From NCBI GenBank assembly GCA_907165135.1, contig OU015567.1, positions 6,324,001-6,388,000 on the forward strand: DNA of 64,000 nt. Direction: 5' to 3'. Position 1 is the stretch's first letter. Each line of letters starts with the position of its first letter. This stretch comes from Oikopleura dioica. Taxonomy: Eukaryota; Animalia; Chordata. Position numbers and translations under genes: made by a program. Below are positions 5,343 to 35,821 of the stretch, in pieces. The notes under the pieces were generated by a model. It worked only from the letters and a program-made list of their open reading frames with translations, was not told the origin of the DNA and made no database searches.

Positions 5343-7097
5343 TCATGTTCTGCTTCGCTCGAGAGTCTTCCTGATGGTTTGGCGGAAAAGATTCAGGTTG
5401 TACATCATAATCCCTTGAAAAGAAAAAAAATCACCCAGGACTCAATGAAGCTCTGAATACCTCTTTGATCTAGCGCATCTTCTCGGACAACGCAAACGAG
5501 TGCCAAATTGCTCGTAATACCATACAGACACAGGACAATTTCCTCCTTCATCGTCACCCAGCTCTCATGATTCTCATCAAAGGCCGGTATGATCAGGGTG
5601 GCTATTTTGGACAAAATTTTGGGGTCTGGCCATCCAATTTCCATCCAATAAATTTTAAGTCCGAACTATCCATCCAAAATCCAATCCAATCCAAATTTTC
5701 CCAATTCCCCAATTATCCCCAATTCCAATTGGATTTCCAATTTTTTAAAGGCTTCTTTTACTTTGAAAAGAAGGGAAACAGTAATTTTTTATCCGAAAGG
5801 AGGATCGACAGAGTCAAAAAGATGATATTTTATCCGAATTTGTTCATTTTTATCATGAAAATAACCCTTCTTTGCATAGTTTAGAGATATGTTTCTTCTT
5901 GGATCCAATTCCCCCAATTTCTCCCAATTGCCCAATTTTCCCCAACAAAATCCGGTACCCGGGCCATCCAAATTCCATCCAAACCTTATTGGATTGGATC
6001 CAATCCAATTCCAACAAACCCCCAAATCCAAAATAGCCACCCTGGGTATGATATCGTCGTCAGAATCGCCAATCTCAGACAATCTTGAATATTTGAATTA
6101 ATACAGAGACTGGATTGAGAATTGAAAGCTTGAATATTTCATTGGAATCAAGGAAGACTCACCTAGCTCCTTCGTAGACGTTTGAAATTCCGTCGACCAT
6201 TTCGATCATCCCGGAGCAAATTTCATAAATGCTTAGCTGCGTGTTCTCGGCGGGCGAGCTATCCGTTGCGATGAATAATTTCGTCCTCACGTCCATTAGA
6301 TACGCTTTCGCTACATTGGCGTTACTGAAAAAACGCAGATTAATTACAGGCGACAGCTAAATCGACATCACTGCCATACTTGATCATGAGATTGAGCCAC
6401 TTTTCGAGCTGTGCTTGTTCGGGAATTCGTTTCTGGATCACCTTGGACATTGCGTCGAAGATTGTTTGGTCCATCGCCGAGGTCGTCGAGATTTGGATTC
6501 CAATTTGGTCGTTGATGTTTTCTGAAGAGTTTTGTTCAAAGAATTTTGCCCGGCAAGACACTTACCGATGTAATTTAGGGTGTCATCGTGAATTGCGTTG
6601 AGTTCTTCTTCGTTCAAACCGTCTGATTTGTGCATGAAAATGTCAAAGGTCAAGTTTTTATTGTAGTTTTTCAACAGCTCCGCGGACTTGTACAAATCTG
6701 TCAAAGCGTTTTGGTAGCTTTGGCCATCTTGAAAAAGGAGGTAAACGAGGGTAAAGCATGGTTTGTTTCTACCTTGGGAATCGATGACATATATAACTGC
6801 CAATTTTGCCGAGTTGTCGCCAATATCGAGGCCGTTTTCAGAAGCGGGCAAGTGCCACGTGTCTTGTGGCACCTCGGAAAGGTCTTTCATGCCCGGAAAG
6901 TCGACGATTTTCATTTTGGCAAAGGCGTTCATTTGCGTGTCCACCCTGACTTCGATCGTCTGCTCTACGTAAATAATCTGCGTCGGCTGGAGTCCGTCGA
7001 AAATTCGCTCTTTGATGGTTGTTTTGCCAGCAAGACGAGGGCCCAGGAACAGGAGGATGATCTCCTCGAGTTCTTCTTGGCTGTTCTTCTCCTCCAT
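5343..7097 (-). CDS. RRAGC: Rag GTPase RagC/D (Gtr2-like), multi-exon; one exon interrupted by a hAT-type element
   Basis: LFLGPRLAGKTT P-loop, IVDFPG, VIYVIDSQ, FDIFMHKSDGL, TIFDAMSKVIQKRIP, AYLMDVRTKLFIATDSSP, LALVCVVRE, YNLNLFRQTI. Collinear with RagC/D; C versus D not resolved. Confidence 0.92.
5594..6044. mobile_element. Non-autonomous hAT-like element (451 bp) inserted in a RagC/D coding exon
   Basis: Perfect 18-bp TIR CAGGGTGGCTATTTTGGA; 8-bp TSD GGTATGAT at 5586-5593 and 6045-6052; internal CCAATT/CCATCCAA repeats. Confidence 0.92.
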
Positions 7098-7292
7098 GAT
7101 TTCTGAAGAACAAAAAGTGATTCACAGATTGTTTTTTATTAATATTGCAGCTCGTGTGTACAAAACTATATTTCTGTGTAATACAAATTCATCAAATATG
7201 GAAATGTTCAAGTCTGGGTAGTGATGTGAAAATTGTGAGAAGAGGAGATCTGTGAGAGAAAGATACAGGTAGATTTTCTGCTGGTTTTGTTT

Positions 7293-7749
7293 TTACAAGA
7301 CATTATCGCTCTGGCGACGGGCTTTGGCAATAGTGCGCTCGGTGGTTGGTGGAAGCTCTGATCGGCGAACTGATCGAACTTTTTCTTCGATTCGTCGGAC
7401 GAGCTTGTTGCACTCAGTTTTTGGCTATTTTTAACATATTACTTTGCTTTGGCAAGTAGGTGTTTTTACCTCCTCCGTCGATTCATGCGTTCTATCTTCT
7501 CCTGATTCTTTTCGTCTCCATATGGCGATTTAGGAACAGTGTCTTTGAGCATTTTGCAGATGGCTTCAGGATGGACATCTGCCTGTTTGTAAAATTAAAA
7601 AAAATATGCCAAAGAAGAGCTACCTCGAGAAACTGAAGAATATTCCCGAAAAGCGTCGGGTCAATATTGACATCGGCATGTCTTGTCAGCTGGTAGAGCT
7701 GTTTCTGATCTTCTGACATGGATGTATAGCTCTTTGGAATCTTTTCCAT
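7293..7749 (-). CDS. MZT2: MOZART2/MZT2-like gamma-tubulin complex protein (3' exon uncertain)
   Basis: MSEDQKQLYQLTRHADVNIDPTLFGNILQFLE|ADVHPEAICKMLKD resembles the MZT2 core (ELYELAQ..IDPDVFKILVDLL..V.P.AVFQMLK). A GT-AG intron joins the two segments. Confidence 0.65.
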
Positions 7750-12227: not shown

Positions 12228-14749
12228 TTAGTAGTTCGCTTTCGCGAGCTTTTTGTTGTGGTAGTAAGGGTTTTTGAAATTGACCAGCAATTTGTAGAGT
12301 TCGAGGAAGCTTGTGTCACGGTGCTCCAGGGGCGTTTTTACAACGGCAGTTGTTGGAATGTCTGGAACCTTTTTTCGTGGTTTTCAAATGAGGGCAATAA
12401 GAATTTCCCGTGTACGTTAGGGTGGGGTCCATTATCCTCTCACCTTGGAGTCTCCCGGACAGCCCCCCCCTACTTAGCAATGGTGGGGGTCAGTCGGGGG
12501 TGGAGCCCATTCACAGGCGAGGGAACCCCCTCCTACAAAACAATTATCCCCACCCATCTCATTTTATACCTCATTTAGTTCTCAGGGAAAACGAGTTTCT
12601 ATTTTAAAACCCCGTTCCGAAACTACATCTTCAATATCGTCATCTGGATCCATTCTGAACGTGAATCGCTTCGATAACGAGTAGACCAGATCCCTAATTT
12701 CCATTAATTACAAATTCCAATTTTTAATGAATTAAGTACGTGAGCGTCTCCTTGCTTTTGTTGTTTTCAATGTAGAATCCGTCTTCGTAAGACCAGAAGA
12801 CGATGATGTGGTCGAAAATGACTTTCGTTCCTTCTATTGCTTGAATGTAAGTGATTGCAAAGGGCTTTTCGGTAAAGTCCATGTCGGCTCGTTGTCGGAC
12901 GCAAAAAGGGATGAAAAGGGTTGGTCGTCAAACTTCGAAAATTTCTACAGAGGAGTCTTCTGATAGCGAATATTTCAATCTGACCTATCAAGAATCTGAT
13001 TGGCTGAATTTTTATTTCAAAAAGCCGCTTGCAAATAGCTACTCTTTTAAATGAATATTCAGCCAATCAGAGACTTGATAGGTCAGATTATATTTTTCGC
13101 TATCAAAGGAATCTTCTGTAGAAAATTTTCGATTTTCGAAAATTGAGAGAGAAAGTGATTCATCCCTAGACGCAAAAGAATCCCGGTTTTCTCGTCGGCT
13201 CGCTGCGTAAAATCGCCTCTGCTTCCTGCCGATTGACGTGCCACATCCAACTGTGAGCAACTTCAGTCGACTGGTTTTTCAGATACTGTCCTTTGATCAG
13301 AATAGCAAGCAGATTGACCATTCCGAGGAGACGAGCGTACAGTCGCATTTCCCGCTTCCACTTGAGCTCGTTTTGAATGTAACTTTCGTAGAGGCGATTC
13401 AAGCCGCGGAAGTGTCCTTTTTCAGCGGCTTTCTTCGGAAAATATGAAATTTAGGGGGCTGCGGCTCTTCCAAAAGTCGACGGCAAAGTCCATACTAAAC
13501 GAATTTCAAAAATAAGGCTCTCAAATAGATTCTACCTTGTTCGTATTTTCTTCCGCCTTTCTGTGATCATTTTTCAGCGCCGCTCCGACTTTTCCCGGCG
13601 TCAAATATGCCTCGAACTTGTAATGCTTTCTCGCTTCTTCGAGAAGTCCTTTCAGATCATCGTGGCTTTTCTTCAAATCCGAAATCGAGAACTTTCCTTC
13701 TTCGCACATCGGCGAGCAGAAGAATCTCCTGCAGTCGTGGAAGATCGTTTTGTAAGTAATTTCGTTTCTGCTCGATTTTCGCATGCAGAGTATGGAGTCG
13801 GCAACCTGTGTAGAAACCTGAGTCAGAGTACTGAAAGGCTGTTTATGAATGCTCTTTCAGGACACTGAGTCATGTTTCTACACAGGTTACCGAGCCCAAT
13901 TCAAAGCATGAACGCGTTGCCATTTGATTTCGGACGCAGATTGATTCTTCTCGTGTAGGAATAATTCTTGATCCAGGCATAGTGCCGATCCGTTACGAAT
14001 TTCAAGCAGTACCCCTCGAAAACGCTAGAAATCGTCCCCCAGAAGCATCCTTGGCGAACTGTGTCTAGCGTGATGCTTTCATTCGAACTGCTTCCTTCCA
14101 TGTCATCTGAAAATGGAGGATTTGGACATTTAAAAAATATAATGAATCTGATTGACAATCAACTTAGATCACAGAAGAGGTAAAAGAGAAAAAATTCTAG
14201 AGAGCAGCAACAGCTGATTTTCTTCTTTTCACGGAGGTTTGAGAAAGTTATTCGAAGGAGCGACGTTTGGGCGATAAGGGCCGATCAAGCAGGGCGCTAG
14301 AATTCGCTCCAAATTGACCCAGCGATGGACTTTCTGGAAGAGTTCTGTTCCGTCTTCTCCGGCTGAGCGCATCAGTTCGTCCCCGCCGCCCGGGTGGAAA
14401 TCCATGTAAGGAGAACAGTTGTACGCTTTTCCCGCAAATGCGATCCAGCAATCTTCCCTTCGTTGAACAAAAAAATAGTTACAGTAACACTCATCTAAAA
14501 AAACCTTGTTTTATGCAATGCTAGCTCATCTTGAGTAACTGGCCTTCTCGGAGAAATTCCAGAGACGTTCTGTCCTTTCCTCACAATCGTCATCCAATTC
14601 GACAGTCCAAAACCTGGTTTTAACGGCACTAGAATATTTTTAGAAAAGAATAGGGTTGATTCTTTACCTTTGACTTGATTTGGCGAAATTTCCGAATGAC
14701 GAATGACTGTATTTTTCTCTGAACTTCCAGAACTTCCTTCTTCTGACAT
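12228..14749 (-). CDS. SH2-domain protein, multi-exon; SH2 exon interrupted by a hAT MITE (possibly disrupted allele)
   Basis: WMWHVNRQEAEAILRSEPTRKPGFFCV/RQRADMDFTEKPFAITY...DHIIVF resembles SH2 alphaA-betaB (FLVRES-like). The frame is continuous only after removing 12906-13168 plus one TSD copy. Confidence 0.65.
12906..13168. mobile_element. hAT MITE (263 bp) with Ac/Ds-like TAGGGATGAA terminus
   Basis: Termini AAGGGATGAA and TTCATCCCTA; 8-bp TSD GACGCAAA at 12898-12905 and 13169-13176; long internal inverted repeat at about 12936-13131. Confidence 0.9.
13792..13899. mobile_element. MITE family A, short copy, intronic
   Basis: GGAGTCGGCAACCTGTGTAGAAACCTGAGTCAG ... CTGAGTCATGTTTCTACACAGGTTACCGAGCCC. 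Confidence 0.85.
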
Positions 14750-25900: not shown

Positions 25901-28900
25901 CCTTGTGTGTTTCCACTTTGGTCGAGAATGTGCAAAGTATTCTTAGCTTCGCCATCATCCCCTGTTCTTTGACCTCCAGTGCGATCTGAAAAGGTCAAAT
26001 AGTGAAAATAGACGAGAATCCAGATGCAAAGCAGACCTAATGAGGCGCAAATTTATTAATTAGCGCCGTATAACCGCTAATTTTCAATCAACTCATGGCC
26101 CCAATTAGCCGCCTAATAATCTGTCCAAATTAGTTACTTAGGCACACGCCGAGAGGTTTAATGACCCGAAAGAAGGTGCCAAACAGCGCCGTCGCCAGAG
26201 GCGCTAGTCAAAGCTAATATTTAGATCTGTGAAAATTTAAATTGTTCAGAAAAAATTTTGGGCAATGAAAAATATGGAGGCGGAGAAAAAGAGGAAGATT
26301 TCATTCGGCATCGATGATATTTTATCAGAGTAAGTTCGAATTCCTTGTTTTTTAATCGAAGTTTTAGTAAATTTGGGGACTCGCCGGCGCCTCCGAAAAA
26401 GGCCAAATCTGAGGTGCCAAAGAAGAAGGACGGCTTTTTATGGCCTGCTTGGGTTTACTGCACTCGCTACTCAGATCGCCCTCCCGCCGGACCAAGAACC
26501 CGAAGAGTTCGCAAAAAACGCGCAGAAAAACGCCCTAGAACCGCGTTTACCAGCGACCAACTTGAAATTCTTCAAGAAGAATTCGACAAGCACCAATATT
26601 TGACCGAGGAGCGAAGGGTACTGCTCGCTAAGAATCTCAAACTTTCCGTCTCGCAGATAAAAGTTTGGTTTCAAAATAAACGCGCGAAGATTAAAAAAGT
26701 ATCTGGCGTGAGAAATAACCTGGCTACTCAGCTTATGGCTCAGGAAAGGTCAAAAAATCGAGACGCATCTTTTGGGTGTAGGGCGCCCAGGTTCACAATT
26801 GTGAACCCGGTTCACAAAATTTTTAAAAGTATGAAATCAGGGGTCTGTATGCGCTCCGCGCCTGATTTCATAGAGAAACTCATTTTTGACGTTATGAGCT
26901 TTCTTTACAACCGCGCCTTCAGTCAATTTGAGTCACTTTTTTGACCGAAATTGTGAACCAGGTTCACAAAATTGTGAACCGGGTTCACAAAATTGTGAAC
27001 CAACCGATTGTGAACCTGGGCGCCCGCCACCCCATCTTTTTCCTTTTTCATAATTTAAAAAATAATTTTTTAAAATGATTTTTTTCCTGACCTAAATAAG
27101 GGCCTCTACAACCATGTTCCTGAAAACTCAATCTCGCTCCCTGTATCTACCGAAGAAAACGCTCACTGTAAATGAAGCACTGTAAATATTGTGATAAATG
27201 AGTGAATAAATGTTTTATTAATAAATGTTAAAAGGTACGAAACTCATGAAGCAGAAGATTCTTTTGAAAAAGGAACTTCTTCTTTACCTTTGCGATGATC
27301 GACGACGGTTTGGAAATCGCTCTGCTTCTGGAGGTCGTTCAAAATGTTGAATTTCACGAGTGTCAGCGCATGTTCTTAGAATTTTCTAAGAGAAAGGAAA
27401 ATTGTTGTTGTTTTTACCTTGTGGTGCAGCGTCGAGCCATTCATTTAGCCGGTGAGGCAGATGAAGAAGTTGAGAAGCAGCTCTAACAGCTTTGACTTCA
27501 TTTGGGTAGAGATCGTGCCAGCCATGGCCTTTATTAAGAATTCTGATCTTGACGTCGCTTTGTAAATTGCGCCACCACGTGGGAGTTGTGTTGTGAATAA
27601 CGACGATTTGCTTCTGATGCTCTATTTCTCCGTCGTCGCTTAAAAAAACTTACGATCCTTGGAAAACAAAGCTATTTCTTACCGAATAGTAACGTCGTAT
27701 TTGACGAGCAAGTCAATAATCCTTGCGTTGATAGAGCCGATTCCCCACTTTTCGATCTTTTCAGGAGGGCATCGCTCGTGAATCAGCTCTTTTCGGACTT
27801 CAACGGGAAGATTTCGCCACCATTGAGGGCTGTTGATTTTGTTGAACGGTGGTAAATCGTGGTTATGATTATCATATTGTGCTATCAATTCGTTCGATCG
27901 CTTGAGTTGATCATCTTCTTCCCCAGCTCGAAGTTCTTCCACTCGTTTTTGGACCAAATGTCGAAGTCCCTTGAAATCGTAAAAGCTCGCTCGAAGTGGC
28001 TCTGGCATCGCTACCAACTTATGCCAAGAGTCCCAGTGCACTGCCAAATGCTTCAAAATTTCCAATCTCGTCGCGGAAAGAATCTGCAAAGAAAGACCAT
28101 TGTTTAGGACCCATTCAGCCAAATCTCCTGGCATCATTGCTAGGGATGCCCTACAAAAAATCAACTTTTCTCCCTTTCATTGTAGAGGATTGATATTTAG
28201 GTTACATATAAAACATGACTTCTGAAAAAGATAGAGGTTTGAAAAAATACAGTACCTCGAGTCTGAGTACTGTAATCACGTGTTAAAGTCAGTAAAAAAG
28301 CCAAAATCGTCCCTGCAATATATTTTTTCTTGGTTTCCACATATATTGTGTAGAATTGAATGCTGATTCCAATGGAGCAAAAATTTTTCGGGAATCGATA
28401 ATTGTAAGTACAAAAAAGTACTTTTTCATTGTAACAAGGGGGTCTGAGGTTCGAATCCTGATGAAAACATTCTTTTTTTCTTCCTTTTTTTCATGCACAT
28501 TTGAAGTTTTATTGTAAATATAGTAAATAAAAGACATATTACACCTTAAATATTATCATCAATTTAAAAATTTTTTAGAAAATCATCAAAAATTTTGAGA
28601 AATAATTTTCGTTTTCTAATTTTCGACATTTCGTGTTTAAAAAAAGTCTGAAAGATATTTTCCCTGCGGCACCACGGTCGCGTTATGTCAGGTTCACGTG
28701 CGCCTTGCTTTAAATTTCCATGTAAGACCGTTTAACTTCACTCTGAGGAAGTCTCACTATCATGAAAAAAATATTTTTATTCTTTTTGACTGCTGTGAAG
28801 GCGTATCGTTTCTGGTTAGAATTGTAATTGCACGTCTTGCGTTAAGTTGGGTGTCGCCCGAGAGGGATGGCGCCCCAACTACAACCACGAGCAGAGACGA

Positions 28901-31900
28901 TACGCCTGGTCCAAAATGAGTTCCCTAGTAGTTCGGTTTGGCTGACATCTAGCAGATTCTTCAATGATGGACAAAAGTCATTGTCTCGGCTAATAAAACG
29001 CCAAAAGAAGCCGAAATTTTCATGGTCGGTAAAAACCGGTAGTTGTTCACTTCCTGGGGCACACATAGGAGCGTAAATCTATTCGATCAATTTATTCAAT
29101 TTTTTCTAAATAAAATTATTGAAAATCAAAATAAATCATTCCTGAAGTTGAAGTTTTCCCACTTGCTCTCCATCTTTCCGTCTGCTAAAATGCTGAATGC
29201 CGTTTTCCGTTGGCATTGTCGCTCGAATGGACATAGCTGATCTGCATTTTTCAATTCCCCATGTTTCGCTTTTTTCTTCTCCATAGTGGAACGTTCTCAA
29301 GAATTTTCTTATACCAACAAGGGTATCTTCGAAATTTTCGTCTTCATCTCTCTTTGGAAAATGGTGCGTTTTAACTGGATCCAAAGGGGTCACTTCAATT
29401 GGTTTCCGCCGCTTGCAGGATTCAAAAGCAGGAAAAAATGCAAATAAAAAAAACATTTTTGTCATCATTATTCGTAAGAATGAATTTTTCCTCTGTCGTT
29501 GGCTCTATAAGAAGCAGTGCGCACGTGAACCTGACATCACAAATGCCCCCTGGGGGCTTGTCTTTTCAGAAGTTGACGATCATGAACATGCAATGCCGGG
29601 AGAAAACGTGTTTTTTTTTAGAAAATTCCCTCAAAATGTCAACATTTTTTTTTGTCTTTCAGAGTTATTTTGGATTTAAAGACAAGTATTACTGTAAAAG
29701 AGACCATTGTTTAAATATTCAATCGATATTTGTTGTTTTCTTCGCAAAAAAAAGTAAAAAAAAAAATATGTTTTCGTCAGGATTTGAACCCCAGACCCCC
29801 TGGTTACAATAAAAAAGTACTTTTCTGTACCTTCTAGTACCGATTCCCAAAAACTTTTTTCATGAATGGAATCAGAATCAAATTCTACATAATATATGTG
29901 AAAATCATGAAAAAAAAAATTGAGGAAGTGCTTTATTCTATCATTTAGGGCGCTTTGGCATCTGATTGGCTGAAAAAAAAAATTTTTTTTTGGGCCCAAA
30001 ATTTTTCTCTTGATCGAAAACCTATGGTCCCCGGAAATAATTCCGATCGGATGTAAACTGTAGAAGTTGATTTTTTTGTAGGGCATCCCTAATCATTGCC
30101 CACCAGTCTGGAAGTCGCGATCGGACGGAAATGAGACCATGCTCGTCGAAGGAAATCAAGACTCCGTAATTTCTAATCAACTGCAATAAAGCGCCTTCCA
30201 AATCAGTGAGCTTGTTCTTGAGCAATTTTTCCGAAGTGACTCCCGATTCGTTCAGTGCATCTTTGAGGCCAAAAGGAAGCCGTTGGTACCAATCTGGTTC
30301 CTTCTCGGAAACTTTGATCAAACCATCTTCGGTCTCTTCAATGATGTCACCATACTGAGCAGCAAAAAGGAACAGATATTCTGGCATTCTGGCGGGTCTT
30401 CGCAGCGCTAAAGTTTCAGCGCCCCATCCAACAGATTTGAACTTTTCGCGAACTTGGAATCGCAAATCGCTCCACCAAGTCGGATCCTTTCGGTAAACCG
30501 TGATTTCTTTGAATCGCTTTGAATTCTCAATGACGATGCCTGTTTCTTCCAAAGCGGCAATCAGTCCTTCCGTTGCCAATTCTGGCCACTGGCGGCGCAT
30601 TTTGTCAACGCTCCAGTTTTCTCGGTTCAGAAGATATTTGGCGCGAAGGGGAAGTGTTTGAAGAGGAGAGTTGTGGTAAAGAACTCCAATCTGTAGATCT
30701 TCCAGAGTTTCTTGATCGTCGACGGATAGATCAGGGTGAGTTTCTACTTTCTTCTCGACGGTGGTTGGGACAGAAAGAACTCCAGCGGATCTTGCGAAAG
30801 GGCGATCAGACCCGGTTCCTTCTTCCGCTTGAGCAAAATTCCTCCGGCTCGTATCATGACCAAAGTCTCTTGTTTGATTCTTCGCTGGAGAAGTTCCCAT
30901 ATCAGCCTTCGCTGGCCAGAGCGTCGCCTGTGAAACTGCAGAGACAGACTGATTCTTAGTCGAAGATTTTGAAGCTGCTTCGAAATTCCGGCCAATTTCG
31001 GGCTTTGAAGGGACTTTCGTTGGCATCGGAATCTCTGGCGTTATTCCATCACTTTGAGATTGGGATGACTGAGGAGTGCCGTTGTCTTGAATTTGTCGTA
31101 TTTCCTGAGACGCACTGTAAGAGTACTCATCGTAAACTGGTTGCTGAGCGGCTTGAACTTGGACTGGTACAGCCTCTTCTTCCAAATAATACTCTTCCTC
31201 GTCGATCAGTTGGTTTTGAGCTGGTGGAGGCGCAGGATTAGCCTGAACTTGTCTTATTTCCTGAGACAAATTGAGACTGTATGAGTATTCATAGTTTACT
31301 GGCTTCTTGGCAGCTGGCACCTGGACTGGTACAATTTCTTCTTCTGAATAATACTCTTCTTCGTTCACTAACTTTGGAGCTGCGGAAACGGGTGGTGAAT
31401 CTTGTATGCTCGTGATCGGTTGCTGTTGACTAAAAGTTGGGTCGGGAGACGTTGCTGAATACGAGTAAAACGAGTCGATATCGGTTTCTGGCCGAGCGCT
31501 AGTGCCGGGTTTCAGATCTTCCGGAAGTGTTGCATCTGTGTTAGCATAAGTCTCTACATCGACCAATGATGTTGGCTCATCAGGACCAGCGCCGGTAGTC
31601 AAGGTTGCGGTTTTAGCCATCACTGACGCAGAAGCGGTTTCCTCGACGGACAAGTTTGCAGCTGAAGTACCAGTGGTGCTGAGTTCTTGAGCGTGATGAG
31701 AAGTCGAGTTGTCAACCGTTGTTGGAGTAATGGATTCAGTTCCGACCGCAAGTGATGCTGTTTTGGGTACACTTGTGATGCCGAAACTATGTTTAATTTG
31801 ACCATCGGGTTGACTTGACTCAGCTGAAACTGTTTTCGTTGGCGAACGAGTAAGGAAGTTTGTGATTCTTCGCCCGATGGAAGTGGGTTCTGAACGCGGC

Positions 31901-34900
31901 TGGGATTGAGGCTGATTAAGAAAGTTAGGAGAATCGTTGTCGATTTCTTCCATTACGGTGGACTTGGAAACAACTCTTCGTCGAAGAAGAGTGACGCTCG
32001 TTGCAGTTCCGGCTTCTTTCATTTCTACCGGATCTTCGACGTTTCGAAGGATTCCCTCTTTTGGAATGTTGATAGCTTCGCTACTTGGTACATAAGATGT
32101 GAGACTGTGGCTCGGAGTCACGTCGTTGCTGGATAAATTGAAGGACAGAGAGCTAGTCGGCATTTTCTCCCAGAAATCAGTGGATGATTCGTTTTGCGTA
32201 AAAGCATGGAAAGCTGTTGATTGGACTTCGTCTCTGATATCGCTCGAGACTGAAATGTACTCATCCTCGGAAGACGGAACGAATTCTTTTTGATTCAAGA
32301 AGGTTGTTGGTGTATGATGCGGGGCGTTCTTCACTTGGAAGCTTTCCTCTGCGTCGTAGTATTCACTCGCGATGGTGCTGTTAGAATTAGTAACTACAGC
32401 TTCAGGGGGACTTTTGTCAAGAATATCTGTGAGGCTTCTTTTGGCAAATTCAACCAAGTCTTCACTCTTCTTTCGCTCGGTCGCCTTTTGGATCGCGGTT
32501 ATCTCTCCAATATCGCGCAAGCCTTCTTGGAGCTCATTTTCAGAGTGACCAAGTACATGAACCGTAGCTTCGTATTCTTCAACGTCATAGTAAGCGTCTT
32601 CAACCTTCAGAGTTCTTGTTTTGTCGAGCGTTTCGATGTTTGTAATGGAACTGATTTTCTTTTCGAGCTCGGGTCTGGAGTCAGCTTCGACTTGAAGAGT
32701 AGCTTGGTACTCGTAATATTCTTCTGGCTCTGGCTCTTTGACCGTAGGTAAGGGAAGAGCCTTGACATAATCAGGATTTGCCATGCTGTTGAAAGCGCGA
32801 ACAGCTTGCGATTTTCGTTTGTGACTGACTTCCGCGGAAACAACGTATTCTTCGTCGTAAGAATAGCCTTTCTCAGCTTCACCTGGAATAACAGGCTTTG
32901 GTAAAGTATCATCTACTCTTTTTAAATCATTGATGGAGCTCAATTTCGAAAGATTTCTAAAAGCAGATTCTCTTGATCGGCCAGTCGCTTCAACAGCCGC
33001 CACATAATCGGAGCCAACTTTTTTCAAAGCACTTTCAGACTTCTCTTGAAGGGGTTCTTCCTCTTCTTCATACTCGTATTCATCATACGGTATTGTGGCA
33101 ACAACATGTCGAGCTTCAGCCTCGATTTCTTCCATCGGATACTCGATGATTTCGGATTCTTGAGGCGAAAAAGATACCCGGGAAGCTGTTTTTCCAAGAG
33201 AATCGGACGATGGCGACTTCAAAATTGACTTTGGAGTGTGATAGTAGTCCCCTACTGGAGCTGTCTTTGCCACAATGATTTCTTCTCCAGTTTGATTTAA
33301 AGATTTAACAGAATAAACGGAGGCAACACCTCCGATATCCTTCAAGACCGCATCTTGCGAGCCAGCGTTCATCCTGACTGTAGCTTCGTAGTATTCTTCG
33401 CCTCCATCCGCTGATTTGAGATATTGCAAAGAAGTGATACTCTCAACAGTCGTGAGCTTTTCGATAGCTTGAGCAGCGTTTTCAGCTTTCACAGAAAGAA
33501 GAGCTTCGTATTCGTGATATTCTCCCATCAGCTGATCATCTGCTTGAGCAAAAGGAGCCGCCTCAGGCTCTTCATCTTCGTATTCATACTCGATCTCTTG
33601 CTCTTGCTTTTGCTGTGTTATTGCGAGTGAAGAGAAATCCTTTTCTGTTTCGATAATTTTGATTTTTTCCGGCTCTACATTACGGTCTTCATATTCGATA
33701 GTTGGCTCATGTTGCCCTTGATCTCCCTGAAAAACAGGTTCTTCTTCGTAATCGTATTCGATTTCGCCAGCAACGTCTGGTGCAGTTTCGATAGTTTCTG
33801 GAATCAGCGCTTTGGAAGCCTTGGAAGATGCCTTGGAGTTCTTTCTGGAAAGTTTCGAATAGATTCTTGAAAACACGCTGGATTTTTTCTTCATTGGTGA
33901 ATTTTGAACGCCAGTTAGGGTTTGTTGAGAGCCCGTTTCCATAATATCTCTGGCTAACTCATTGTTGGCGAGGTACTCTTCCATCTGGTTGGCTTCAAAA
34001 GTAGGGACGCGTTCGACAGCGCTCGTGTCCAAAATGGAGTCCTCGTGAATGATTTCCAATTCGCTTGGCTCTGGTGAGTTCGCTCGTGGGCCTGGCAAAG
34101 GCTCGTATTGCTCGTAGTCATATTCTTGCTCTGGTGCGGTTTGTTGGACAACTGGTTTCTGAGCAGAAGGCTGCACCGGCGCTTGAAAAGCTTGAATTGG
34201 TTCTTGTTCTTCATACTCGTATTCTTCTTCTACTACCGCTTGGACATTCGTTTGAACAGGCTGAGGCACAGGCGCTTGAATGGATTGAGTTATTTCTTCG
34301 TCATATTCGTACTCTTCTTCTGCTGCGGTTGGTTGAACAGTCGGTTGAGGAAGCGGTTGTGGATGCGTTTGAGTAGGGGGTTGCTGGGCGGGTTCGTATT
34401 CGTAATCTTCGTACTCGACGACAGGTTGAGGCGGCGGATTCGCAGATGGATTCGGTTGATCAAGGTCGCCTTTGGCTTTCTTACTGGTTTCCTTTCGTGA
34501 ACATGTTGAACCAGCAGATGGGATGGGACAATAAGGCGCCATTGATAGTTTTTGCGAAAGCTTCTCTTCAAATGATTCCGTGGTAGCATTTGGCTCGTTT
34601 ATCGCGTTGATGAAAAGTAAAAGATTCATAGTTGTGAGAAGAACACACAGAATGTTGAAAATCTTCTCTTCTTCGTAGAAGTGGTAAAGGACGGCAGCTT
34701 CAAGAATCACCCCGAGTAAAAACAAGCCATACGCGAAGTCGAAGTTGTTCAGATCATCATCACGGGTTGATTGGCGGATCGAAAGGACTCCTGCTGATGG
34801 AACTGGGCCGTCGAGTTTTTCTTCGTCTGTATCGATTATTTTCAAGCTTCCGGGAACAGATCGCCTGTTGATGGCTTCGAAGAAATACGCGAGCAAGCAA

Positions 34901-35821
34901 ACAGCAATTCCAGCTAAGATTGAAGTCAGCTGATAATTTTCTGAATAAGACGCTAGAACAGCAAGACACAGGCCGGTTGCGATCATGAAGTTAGCGGAAA
35001 TCCATCGAGAACGAAATCGGTAGTATCCATTCATTCCAGCTTTGCCAAGTGTCAAATAGTTGCTCCAGTAAGTCCAAAATGTTCCGTTGAAGGCTTGATC
35101 ATCTGTCTGTGCGAAGTTTATTGTTCCTTTGACGGGTTTATTTTTCATCGAAATCTTCAAGATACAATTCAATACAAGTAACCCCTTCCTATCAAGTGAT
35201 CATCAGACTCCGACTCTTCCAAGAAATTTTCCCAATGAAACTCCTCCTTCTTCGGCGAAAAGTAAATCTCAGCGTTTGTTCTTGATCCAAGTTGAGTGAC
35301 CATTATCGACTTGATTTCGACATTGATTCTTGAGCTGGAAATAACACGAAGCACAACGTCCTGGATGTTGAAAGATGGTCGTTCCTTGGAAGCAAGGACG
35401 AAGTGGAAGCTCTTGGTGCTTCTTCTCACTTCGTCGGGGTTGATAGTTCTTGGCTTAGAATAAACATGCTTTTTAGTTTCGTCGATGATGGCGCCAATTG
35501 ACACTAATATTGTTAAAAAATAAATTTCAACAAAACATGTTATTATTTACTTGTTATCGGATTGCAAAGAGCGTCGATCCCCCTCATGAAAACCACGCAG
35601 CGAAAATGCTGGACACAATTCACATCAATGTCTAATTTCGGTGCGTTTCTAAGTCTCCGCCAAGCAATGAACAACCAAAGCCCACTTTTTTCGGTTTCAA
35701 AAATCATACCTTTTAGTTTAGTCTTCCTTGTTTTTTTCTGTGACTGAAACCGGTGCCTGAGGAGTGGAAAAGCGCATGCTACATAGAAAACTAAATCTGT
35801 TGAAAAGACAGAGTCCTTCAT
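22959..35821 (-). CDS. Giant (~3000 aa) uncharacterised acidic membrane protein; multi-exon; 5' end uncertain
   Basis: 1716-aa and 717-aa ORFs plus small exons join in frame (phase-1 introns checked at 27287/25986 and nearby). N- and C-terminal hydrophobic helices, EYEYEEE repeats and repeated WW/WY-xx-L(P) motifs. Confidence 0.72.
26265..27175 (+). CDS. en: Engrailed homeobox protein, 3 exons, nested antisense in an intron of the giant gene
   Basis: eh1 FGIDDIL; eh2 [14 protein letters not shown]; homeodomain EKRPRTAF...[13 protein letters not shown]; eh5 LMAQ|GLYNH restored by a GA-AG intron at 26744-27100. Confidence 0.96.
26774..27032. mobile_element. MITE with 8-bp TSD in engrailed intron 2
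   Basis: TIR GGGTG(TA/GC)GGGCGCCCAGGTTCACAA; TSD CATCTTTT at 26766-26773 and 27033-27040; subterminal TTGTGAACC/GGTTCACAA repeats. Confidence 0.88.
28762..29076 (+). CDS. Putative small secreted peptide inside the hAT element; needs one short intron
   Basis: [15 protein letters not shown] signal-like start; in-frame stops within 28814-28846 removable as a short intron; stop followed by AATAAA at 29109 and 29130. Confidence 0.4.
29136..29468 (-). CDS. Putative 110-aa secreted protein inside the hAT element
   Basis: [18 protein letters not shown] signal-like start, basic clusters KRRK, KR and RRK, and a minus-strand AATAAA at 29091-29096. Confidence 0.55.
   Translation of the reverse strand: MMTKMFFLFAFFPAFESCKRRKPIEVTPLDPVKTHHFPKRDEDENFEDTLVGIRKFLRTFHYGEEKSETWGIEKCRSAMSIRATMPTENGIQHFSRRKDGEQVGKLQLQE

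Follow-up and report, generated by a model that had tools for sequence, protein, structure and literature searches.

A hAT-like element interrupts a coding exon

We analysed a 64,000-nucleotide (nt) stretch of the Oikopleura dioica genome (contig OU015567.1, assembly GCA_907165135.1; hereafter the window), in which a 1951-bp element at positions 28141-30091 interrupts, in frame, a long coding exon on the minus strand. The element is bounded by terminal inverted repeats (TIRs) and by an 8-bp target-site duplication (TSD). In an initial annotation, made from the letters alone, it had been described as a transposase-free hAT-type cassette carrying two convergent, co-regulated genes for secreted peptides, and the interrupted exon had been missed. 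Our analysis retains the element and revises its content: it is probably a young, single-copy, non-autonomous hAT element inserted in a coding exon, the internal open reading frames (ORFs) of which are not genes. The features of the locus are as follows, with positions in the window and strands in brackets.

27679-28140 (minus): downstream part of the host exon, in the same frame as the upstream part after excision; codon score 0.17; joined to 30092 by reads of RNA run X8
28133-28140: left copy of the TSD, ATCATTGC, identical to 30092-30099
28141-28168 (plus): left TIR with an Ac-like TAGGGATG start; first 20 nt perfect, 27/28 with an A-run indel
28316-28491 (plus): left subterminal block, 82% identical to the right arm; contains a tRNA-like relic at 28384-28469
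28682-28710 (plus): left 29-nt block with a 19-mer (28685-28703), followed by a TATA-like TTTAAAT
28762-28827 (plus): short ORF with a signal-like N-terminus, 21 codons and a stop
28867-29076 (plus): 69-aa orphan ORF in the frame of the ATG at 28762; codon score -0.14
29077-29135: AT-rich central spacer of 59 bp, with AATAAA on both strands
29136-29468 (minus, stop included): 110-aa orphan ORF with an F-rich N-terminus, intact, with several dibasic sites
29512-29540 (minus): right 29-nt block with the 19-mer (29519-29537), followed on the minus strand by a TATA-like TTATAGA
29747-29922 (minus): right subterminal block of 176 nt; contains a tRNA-like relic at 29769-29854
30064-30091 (minus): right TIR, pairing with the left TIR
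30092-30099: right copy of the TSD, ATCATTGC, identical to the left copy
30092-35172 (minus): upstream part of the host exon; its 1716-aa ORF continues into the element to a stop at 30022

An inverted-repeat search of the window showed that the ends of the element, TAGGGATGCCCTACAAAAAA, are perfect over 20 nt (28141-28160 and 30072-30091), and that the match reaches 27 of 28 nt once extended, with one difference in the length of an A-run. The TIR 14-mer occurs twice in the window, compared with 0.08 occurrences expected by chance. The ends of Ac are CAGGGATGAAA and TAGGGATGAAA, the short TIRs of hAT elements open with YARNG, and Ac/Ds-type hAT elements are recognized by TAGGGATG termini in combination with a target duplication of 8 bp; the TIR found here starts with TAGGGATG and fits the YARNG form. 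Ends, TSD and length of the element were thus all reproduced as initially annotated. None of the five ORFs of the element has a Pfam match, so that no transposase is recognized in it, and the locus is absent among the matches to PF05699 (hAT dimerisation domain) in the genome, suggesting that the element is non-autonomous. The claim that it lacks a transposase also agrees with its want of similarity to the autonomous hAT copies of the genome. Judged by these sequence features, the element is a predicted DNA transposon of the hAT superfamily that is non-autonomous at best. The GC content is 0.28-0.33 in the element arms versus 0.45-0.50 in the host exon.

The host exon and its empty site in another lineage

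A minus-strand ORF of 1716 aa runs from 35172 to 30022, entering the element at its right end and stopping 24 codons inside, and a second minus-strand ORF (28164 to 27679) exits at the left end in the same frame as the upstream one. The element and one TSD copy together measure 1951 + 8 = 1959 nt, that is, 3 x 653, and their removal in silico yields an uninterrupted host reading frame, the downstream piece of which has an exon-like codon score (0.17). A 1708-aa protein called on the contig ends inside the element. A search for orthologues of the host gene returned solely this 1708-aa protein of the window, a search for contigs encoding the host protein had nothing on record, and no Pfam domain was found in the host protein pieces. 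The host protein looks like a lineage-specific giant protein. Around the insertion site, the protein encoded at 27679-35172 (minus strand) shows a recurring PDWY/PDWW/PQWW/PTWW + ..LP..L... motif, and farther upstream it has acidic, E/Y-rich and P/Q-rich repeats.

Three RNA runs were aligned to the stretch, two of them oligo-dT (X11 and X12) and one single-cell (X8), with 4-8 partly aligned reads each; the runs are probably from other lineages or stages. In X8, three reads with at least two distinct starts begin exactly at 30092 and continue for 30 nt, 24 of which agree with the left flank, joining the two flanks at a single ATCATTGC. In the host frame, the six left-flank differences are all synonymous, as is one more at 30112. 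The orthologous exon is therefore expressed, with an empty site, in an O. dioica lineage that has diverged from this one. These empty-site reads, with synonymous differences only, point to a lineage-specific insertion, and the perfect state of TIRs and TSD, together with the empty site elsewhere, indicates that it is recent. Along with the Ac-like ends and the 8-bp TSD, the empty site bears out the earlier assignment to a hAT-type mobile element.

A single copy without a matching autonomous partner

The genome searched comprises 64,281,565 bases in 19 contigs; the OKI2018_I69 assembly of an Okinawan O. dioica male has 64.3 Mbp in 19 scaffolds (PMC8008620). Searches of this genome with the complete element, with its 176-nt block and a degenerate 33-nt core of the latter, and with the 19-mer returned only self-matches or chance-level matches. 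The element is single-copy in its genome, and the search for other TSD-flanked copies that had been proposed as a check yielded the element alone. Two public DNA read sets contain 100% of the sampled words of the stretch, indicating that it is not an assembly artefact; these two sets may be from the source individual itself. DNA run X3 carries the element as well, with one contig spanning the left junction. The X3 contigs show many 1-nt losses relative to the assembly, most of them in short base runs; position 27790 and some 24 more such runs between 27500 and 30700 are affected, and the loss at 27790 would introduce a stop in the host ORF. We suspect that these losses are a sequencing or platform artefact, possibly of long-read data, and X3 served neither as independent evidence nor for a new reading of the ORFs. 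Frames that depend on base runs may be misread, as in the case of the T8 run close to where the 110-aa ORF starts.

Elsewhere in the genome, at least seven near-identical copies of a hAT transposase were found. The autonomous hAT copies of the genome have the TIR CAGGGTGTCAAATCG..., opening CAGGGTG, and other hAT-domain loci carry CAGGGCTG ends. An origin of the element as a deletion derivative of the autonomous hAT was considered and rejected, as blastn and tblastn gave zero similarity and the TIRs differ. An autonomous-looking hAT of about 6 kb lies at L042:2590-8560 (G000:C5:13841500-13851499), with copies on contigs C1 and C4, at least seven being near-identical; it has the TIR CAGGGTGTCAAATCGCGGGGGAT and repeated subterminal AAGGGATCGC motifs, and its matches at ~6490-6950 are offset in steps of 30 nt, which suggests a tandem repeat inside the element. 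A separate hAT family (TIR CAGGGCTGCCGAATTCGGAGC, TSD TAGTAGAC) is present at L052:2681-3500 and 5916-7495 (G000:C3:1853000-1862999); its two occurrences within 5 kb share their TSD, suggesting a segmental duplication in which the insertion was included.

As candidate relatives by TIR, inverted TAGGGATGGCATACAAAA pairs matching the TIR of the element at 15 of 18 positions were examined and judged unrelated, their interior similarity being nil. Such pairs lie at L017:501 onward (G000:C3:712546-723376), C1:147582-164379 and C1:12995781-12998164; the first encloses long ORFs resembling retroelement gag, pol and env, and the resemblance of the ends may be due to chance. In a collection of metagenome contigs, the 19-mer had no match, and an 18-mer of the TIR had seven single matches with no further similarity, as expected by chance. 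The window holds two further hAT-type MITEs (miniature inverted-repeat transposable elements): an Ac-like one of about 270 bp at 12898-13169, with the ends AAGGGATGAAAA... and TAGGGATGAATC... and the 8-bp TSD GACGCAAA, and one at 5596-6046 with the TIR CAGGGTGGCTATTTTGG and the 8-bp TSD GGTATGAT. The TIR of the latter opens CAGGGTG, as do the autonomous hAT copies of the genome.

Mirror-image arms with unevenly conserved blocks

Comparison of the left half of the element with the reverse complement of its right half revealed collinear homology of very uneven conservation, from the ends inward as follows (z-scores against shuffles).

TIR: arm identity 100%; z unscored
Spacers between TIR and first block and between first and second block: about half of the columns identical; z 1.5 and 2.6
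176-nt block (28316-28491 / 29747-29922): arm identity 82%; z 21; 175 nt from the left end, 169 nt from the right end
29-nt block with the 19-mer: arm identity 26/29 (90%); z 10; 541 nt from the left end, 551 nt from the right end
Spacer from the 29-nt block to the ATG: 23/51 columns identical; z 0.8
ATG and following 90 nt: 55/103 columns identical; z 2.5; ATG 621 nt from the left end, 623 nt from the right end
Next 200 nt inward: 93/212 columns identical; z -0.5

The shared 176-nt block was absent from the initial annotation. Collinear blocks at matching distances from the two ends bear out the proposed inverted duplication and later divergence as far as the outer ~700 nt of each arm are concerned; the middle ~550-600 nt of the element are unique. 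The 19-mer ATGTCAGGTTCACGTGCGC, which contains CACGTG, occurs exactly at 28685-28703 (plus) and 29519-29537 (minus), and these two are its sole exact copies in the genome. It is embedded in the 29-nt block, which is complementary between the arms at 26 of 29 positions. An ATG follows the motif after 58 nt on the plus strand (28762) and after 50 nt on the minus strand (29468), so that the identical motif does precede both ATGs, at the very coordinates first described.

Within the 176-nt block, each arm carries an 86-nt tRNA-like relic that resembles class II (Ser-type) tRNAs, with a B-box-like GGTTCGAATCC and a 7-bp stem of acceptor type, and with a T-run directly after it. Only at a relaxed threshold does ARAGORN detect it; the tRNA scan at the default threshold found none, and the Rfam scan gave no match. 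The fold z-scores are weak (-0.9 and -1.65), and all five arm differences that fall within predicted pairs (5/5) retain pairing. We treat this stretch as a relic, not as a gene.

The internal ORFs are most likely not genes

The plus-strand frame opened by the ATG at 28762 stops after codon 21 and again after codon 27. Joining it to the 69-aa ORF would need a hypothetical intron of 33-39 nt, and the one candidate with a GTAA-type donor (intron 28824-28862, donor GTAATT) has an acceptor that lacks a pyrimidine tract. For the 69-aa ORF there was no Pfam match, no paralogue in its own genome and no homologue in the protein search. The described convergence of two ORFs on a spacer of about 60 bp accordingly stands in part: the AT-rich spacer with AATAAA on both strands is there, but the plus-strand partner is broken.

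On the minus strand, the 110-aa ORF and its dibasic clusters (KRRK, KR, RK and RRK) are present as described, and such sites are unsurprising in A-rich DNA. The ORF belongs to no Pfam family, has no paralogue in its own genome, and had no match either among 5.8 billion protein clusters (word-indexed search) or among 1.84 billion representatives scanned exhaustively with phmmer. Weak protein matches at C4:14525377 and C1:12019183 were rejected, being near-identical copies of an unrelated ORF, each with a TGA; of the two, the match at C4:14525377 was checked, and its frame differs from that of the long ORF around it. The ORF has an Atlas protein-language-model recognition score of 1350, where, by the figures of the tool, a score of 2300 is reached by 91% of known-family proteins and by 9% of shuffled or reversed ones. 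AlphaFold returned a mean predicted local distance difference test (pLDDT) value of 44 with no confident fold, which is not informative.

The codon log-likelihood of the 110-aa ORF is 0.022. Among length-matched windows of real coding sequence, the mean is 0.24 and the 5th percentile 0.066; chance open frames have a mean of -0.06, and 16% of them reach 0.022. An ATG-initiated ORF of at least 110 aa occurs in 5-8% of dinucleotide-preserving shuffles. Two other ATG-ORFs of the element, of 124 aa and 136 aa, cross base-run-rich DNA and also score below real exons. Both signal-like N-termini are what an ATG with an A-run and then a T-run encodes, and because they lie at homologous positions of the arms, they go back to one ancestral feature and are not independent of each other. 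The two supposed signal-peptide starts are therefore copies of a single A-run/T-run stretch.

No parental gene or gene fragment for the element interior was found in its own genome at either the DNA or the protein level. The suggestion of a Pack-type, gene-carrying element accordingly gained no support, as the interior shows no homology to a host gene and the DNA and protein searches gave only self-matches. Nor did the co-regulated pair of secreted-peptide genes find support, given the broken plus-strand frame and a 110-aa ORF that is an orphan with non-exon-like codons and a length within the range of chance. The internal ORFs are most likely chance reading frames in AT-rich, base-run-rich DNA, and not genes.

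Origin of the element and alternative explanations

We propose that a hAT transposase supplied in trans would have excised the element elsewhere, and that the element would then have been inserted, with duplication of the target ATCATTGC, in a coding exon that belongs to a large gene on the minus strand in Okinawan O. dioica. Mobilization in trans is possible because the genome encodes hAT transposase domains at other loci. In each arm, the outer ~700 nt probably derive from an old inverted duplication of one end, and the duplicated arms would since have decayed unevenly, with blocks retained and spacers near random.

Several observations weigh against a young, non-autonomous insertion that holds no genes. 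The GC content of the core (0.42-0.43) is above that of the arms. Both arms present, in the same order and spacing, the 19-mer, then a TATA-like box and, about 40 nt on, an ATG with a hydrophobic stretch after it, which together look like a promoter and the start of a signal peptide, and the survival of this layout from the 19-mer to the ATG amid decayed spacers hints at constraint. Signal-like N-termini are rare by our crude rule, being found at 7 of the 1707 ATGs of the window (0.4%), three of them inside the element. There is no second copy for a comparison of conservation or of the ratio of non-synonymous to synonymous substitution rates (dN/dS), and no autonomous partner with a matching TIR was found among the hAT loci of the genome. 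Apart from the three X8 junction reads, the RNA runs cover neither the element nor the host exon and are uninformative on ORF expression or splicing.

These same features can be turned into other accounts of the interior. A single cargo gene, encoding a lineage-specific secreted protein of 110 aa under its own promoter (19-mer and TATA-like box), with the plus-strand start as a decayed partial copy from the inverted arm duplication, would explain why the minus-strand ORF is intact and signal-like by the crude rule while the plus-strand ORF ends after 21 codons; the promoter-like layout common to both arms, the rarity of such N-termini and a codon score within the top 16% of chance ORFs also speak for it. 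We consider it unlikely, as a homologue of the 110-aa ORF was found nowhere in the searches, its codon score lies under the 5th percentile of real exons, its recognition score and pLDDT are low, and its hydrophobic run is a translated T-run. It is quite unlikely that the mirror modules are working inward promoters on a mobile hAT element that drive convergent transcription over the core, with either an orphan 110-aa secreted protein or double-stranded RNA (dsRNA) as the product. We find it very unlikely that the symmetric blocks are cis elements, whether subterminal sites for transposase or host factors, tRNA-like RNA polymerase III (Pol III) units or inward promoters leading to dsRNA. This account would fit the uneven conservation of the arms (100%, 82% and 90% in the blocks against near-random spacers), the B-box-like GGTTCGAATCC, acceptor-like stem and T-run of both arms, and the five differences that all keep pairing. 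But the comparison is one of two sequences, the fold z-scores are weak, the Rfam scan and the default-threshold tRNA scan gave nothing, and patchy gene conversion between the arms would give the same picture. Two co-regulated convergent genes for secreted peptides, as a peptide pair or a toxin and its partner on a mobile module, are extremely improbable: the mirrored 19-mer 50-58 nt upstream of two signal-like ATGs and the AATAAA on both strands of the spacer agree with such a pair, but the plus-strand frame stops after 21 codons and requires a 33-39-nt intron that has no support and a poor acceptor, the searches gave no homologue or paralogue for either ORF, the plus-strand ORF has a codon score of -0.14, and the N-termini, being homologous copies, provide no independent evidence.

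A further possibility concerns the host gene and is compatible with a young hAT insertion devoid of genes: the host pre-mRNA may splice the element out as a nascent GT-AG intron of 1953 nt, leaving the host gene functional. In silico, a donor GT at 30103-30102 (minus strand, in the host exon) and the acceptor TTTTTTGTAG in the left TIR (AG at 28152-28151) would give an in-frame product. The acceptor is strong and pyrimidine-rich, and the downstream host frame is intact and exon-like. On the other side, 1.95 kb far exceeds the typical intron of O. dioica, the donor lies in a weak context (CTG|GTGGGC), the RNA runs, which barely cover the host exon, contained no junction read, and the insertion could instead be just a disruptive allele of recent origin, possibly heterozygous. 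Splicing of this kind is possible but doubtful, and it has a reported counterpart in the MITE-derived introns of the larvacean Fritillaria (PMC11282704).

Comparison with known systems

The young hAT insertion proposed here shares its 8-bp TSD, short perfect TIRs, lack of a transposase and dependence on a transposase in trans with non-autonomous elements of the Ac/Ds type, such as Ds-like elements and hAT MITEs. The terminal 8 nt of maize Ac/Ds are TAGGGATG, as in this element. Compared with hAT MITEs, it is single-copy and, at 1.95 kb, larger; compared with Ac/Ds-type elements, its ~700-nt arms form a decayed inverted duplication, and no autonomous partner with the same TIR was found. Foldback-like elements, in which one end is duplicated in inverted orientation through abortive gap repair, likewise have long subterminal inverted homology around a unique centre, but the arms of classical foldback elements are near-perfect, whereas the arm similarity here is patchy and mostly decayed.

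Pack-type elements (Pack-MULEs and gene-fragment-carrying hAT or CACTA elements) are also non-autonomous, with an interior that is neither transposase nor terminal sequence; different from these, no parental gene or fragment is detectable in the genome of the present element. MITE-derived introns of the larvacean Fritillaria borealis (PMC11282704) and the Introners of Micromonas have in common with it a transposon with TIRs and a TSD in a coding exon and an in-frame GT-AG pair that uses an acceptor in the TIR. Unlike such multi-copy families, the element is unique and much longer, and its possible splicing is an in silico prediction.

Implications

A mobile module of two secreted-effector genes would be striking if true, but the evidence does not carry that reading. 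What the locus offers is one more young hAT insertion in a coding exon of O. dioica, a species with a very compact genome, and the case bears on whether insertions of this kind represent new introns or no more than disruptive alleles. The unevenly conserved blocks of the arms pose a small puzzle as to which parts of a non-autonomous hAT element are constrained. With a clean empty site in another lineage, the locus is convenient for comparing presence and absence of the element, and splicing, between lineages.

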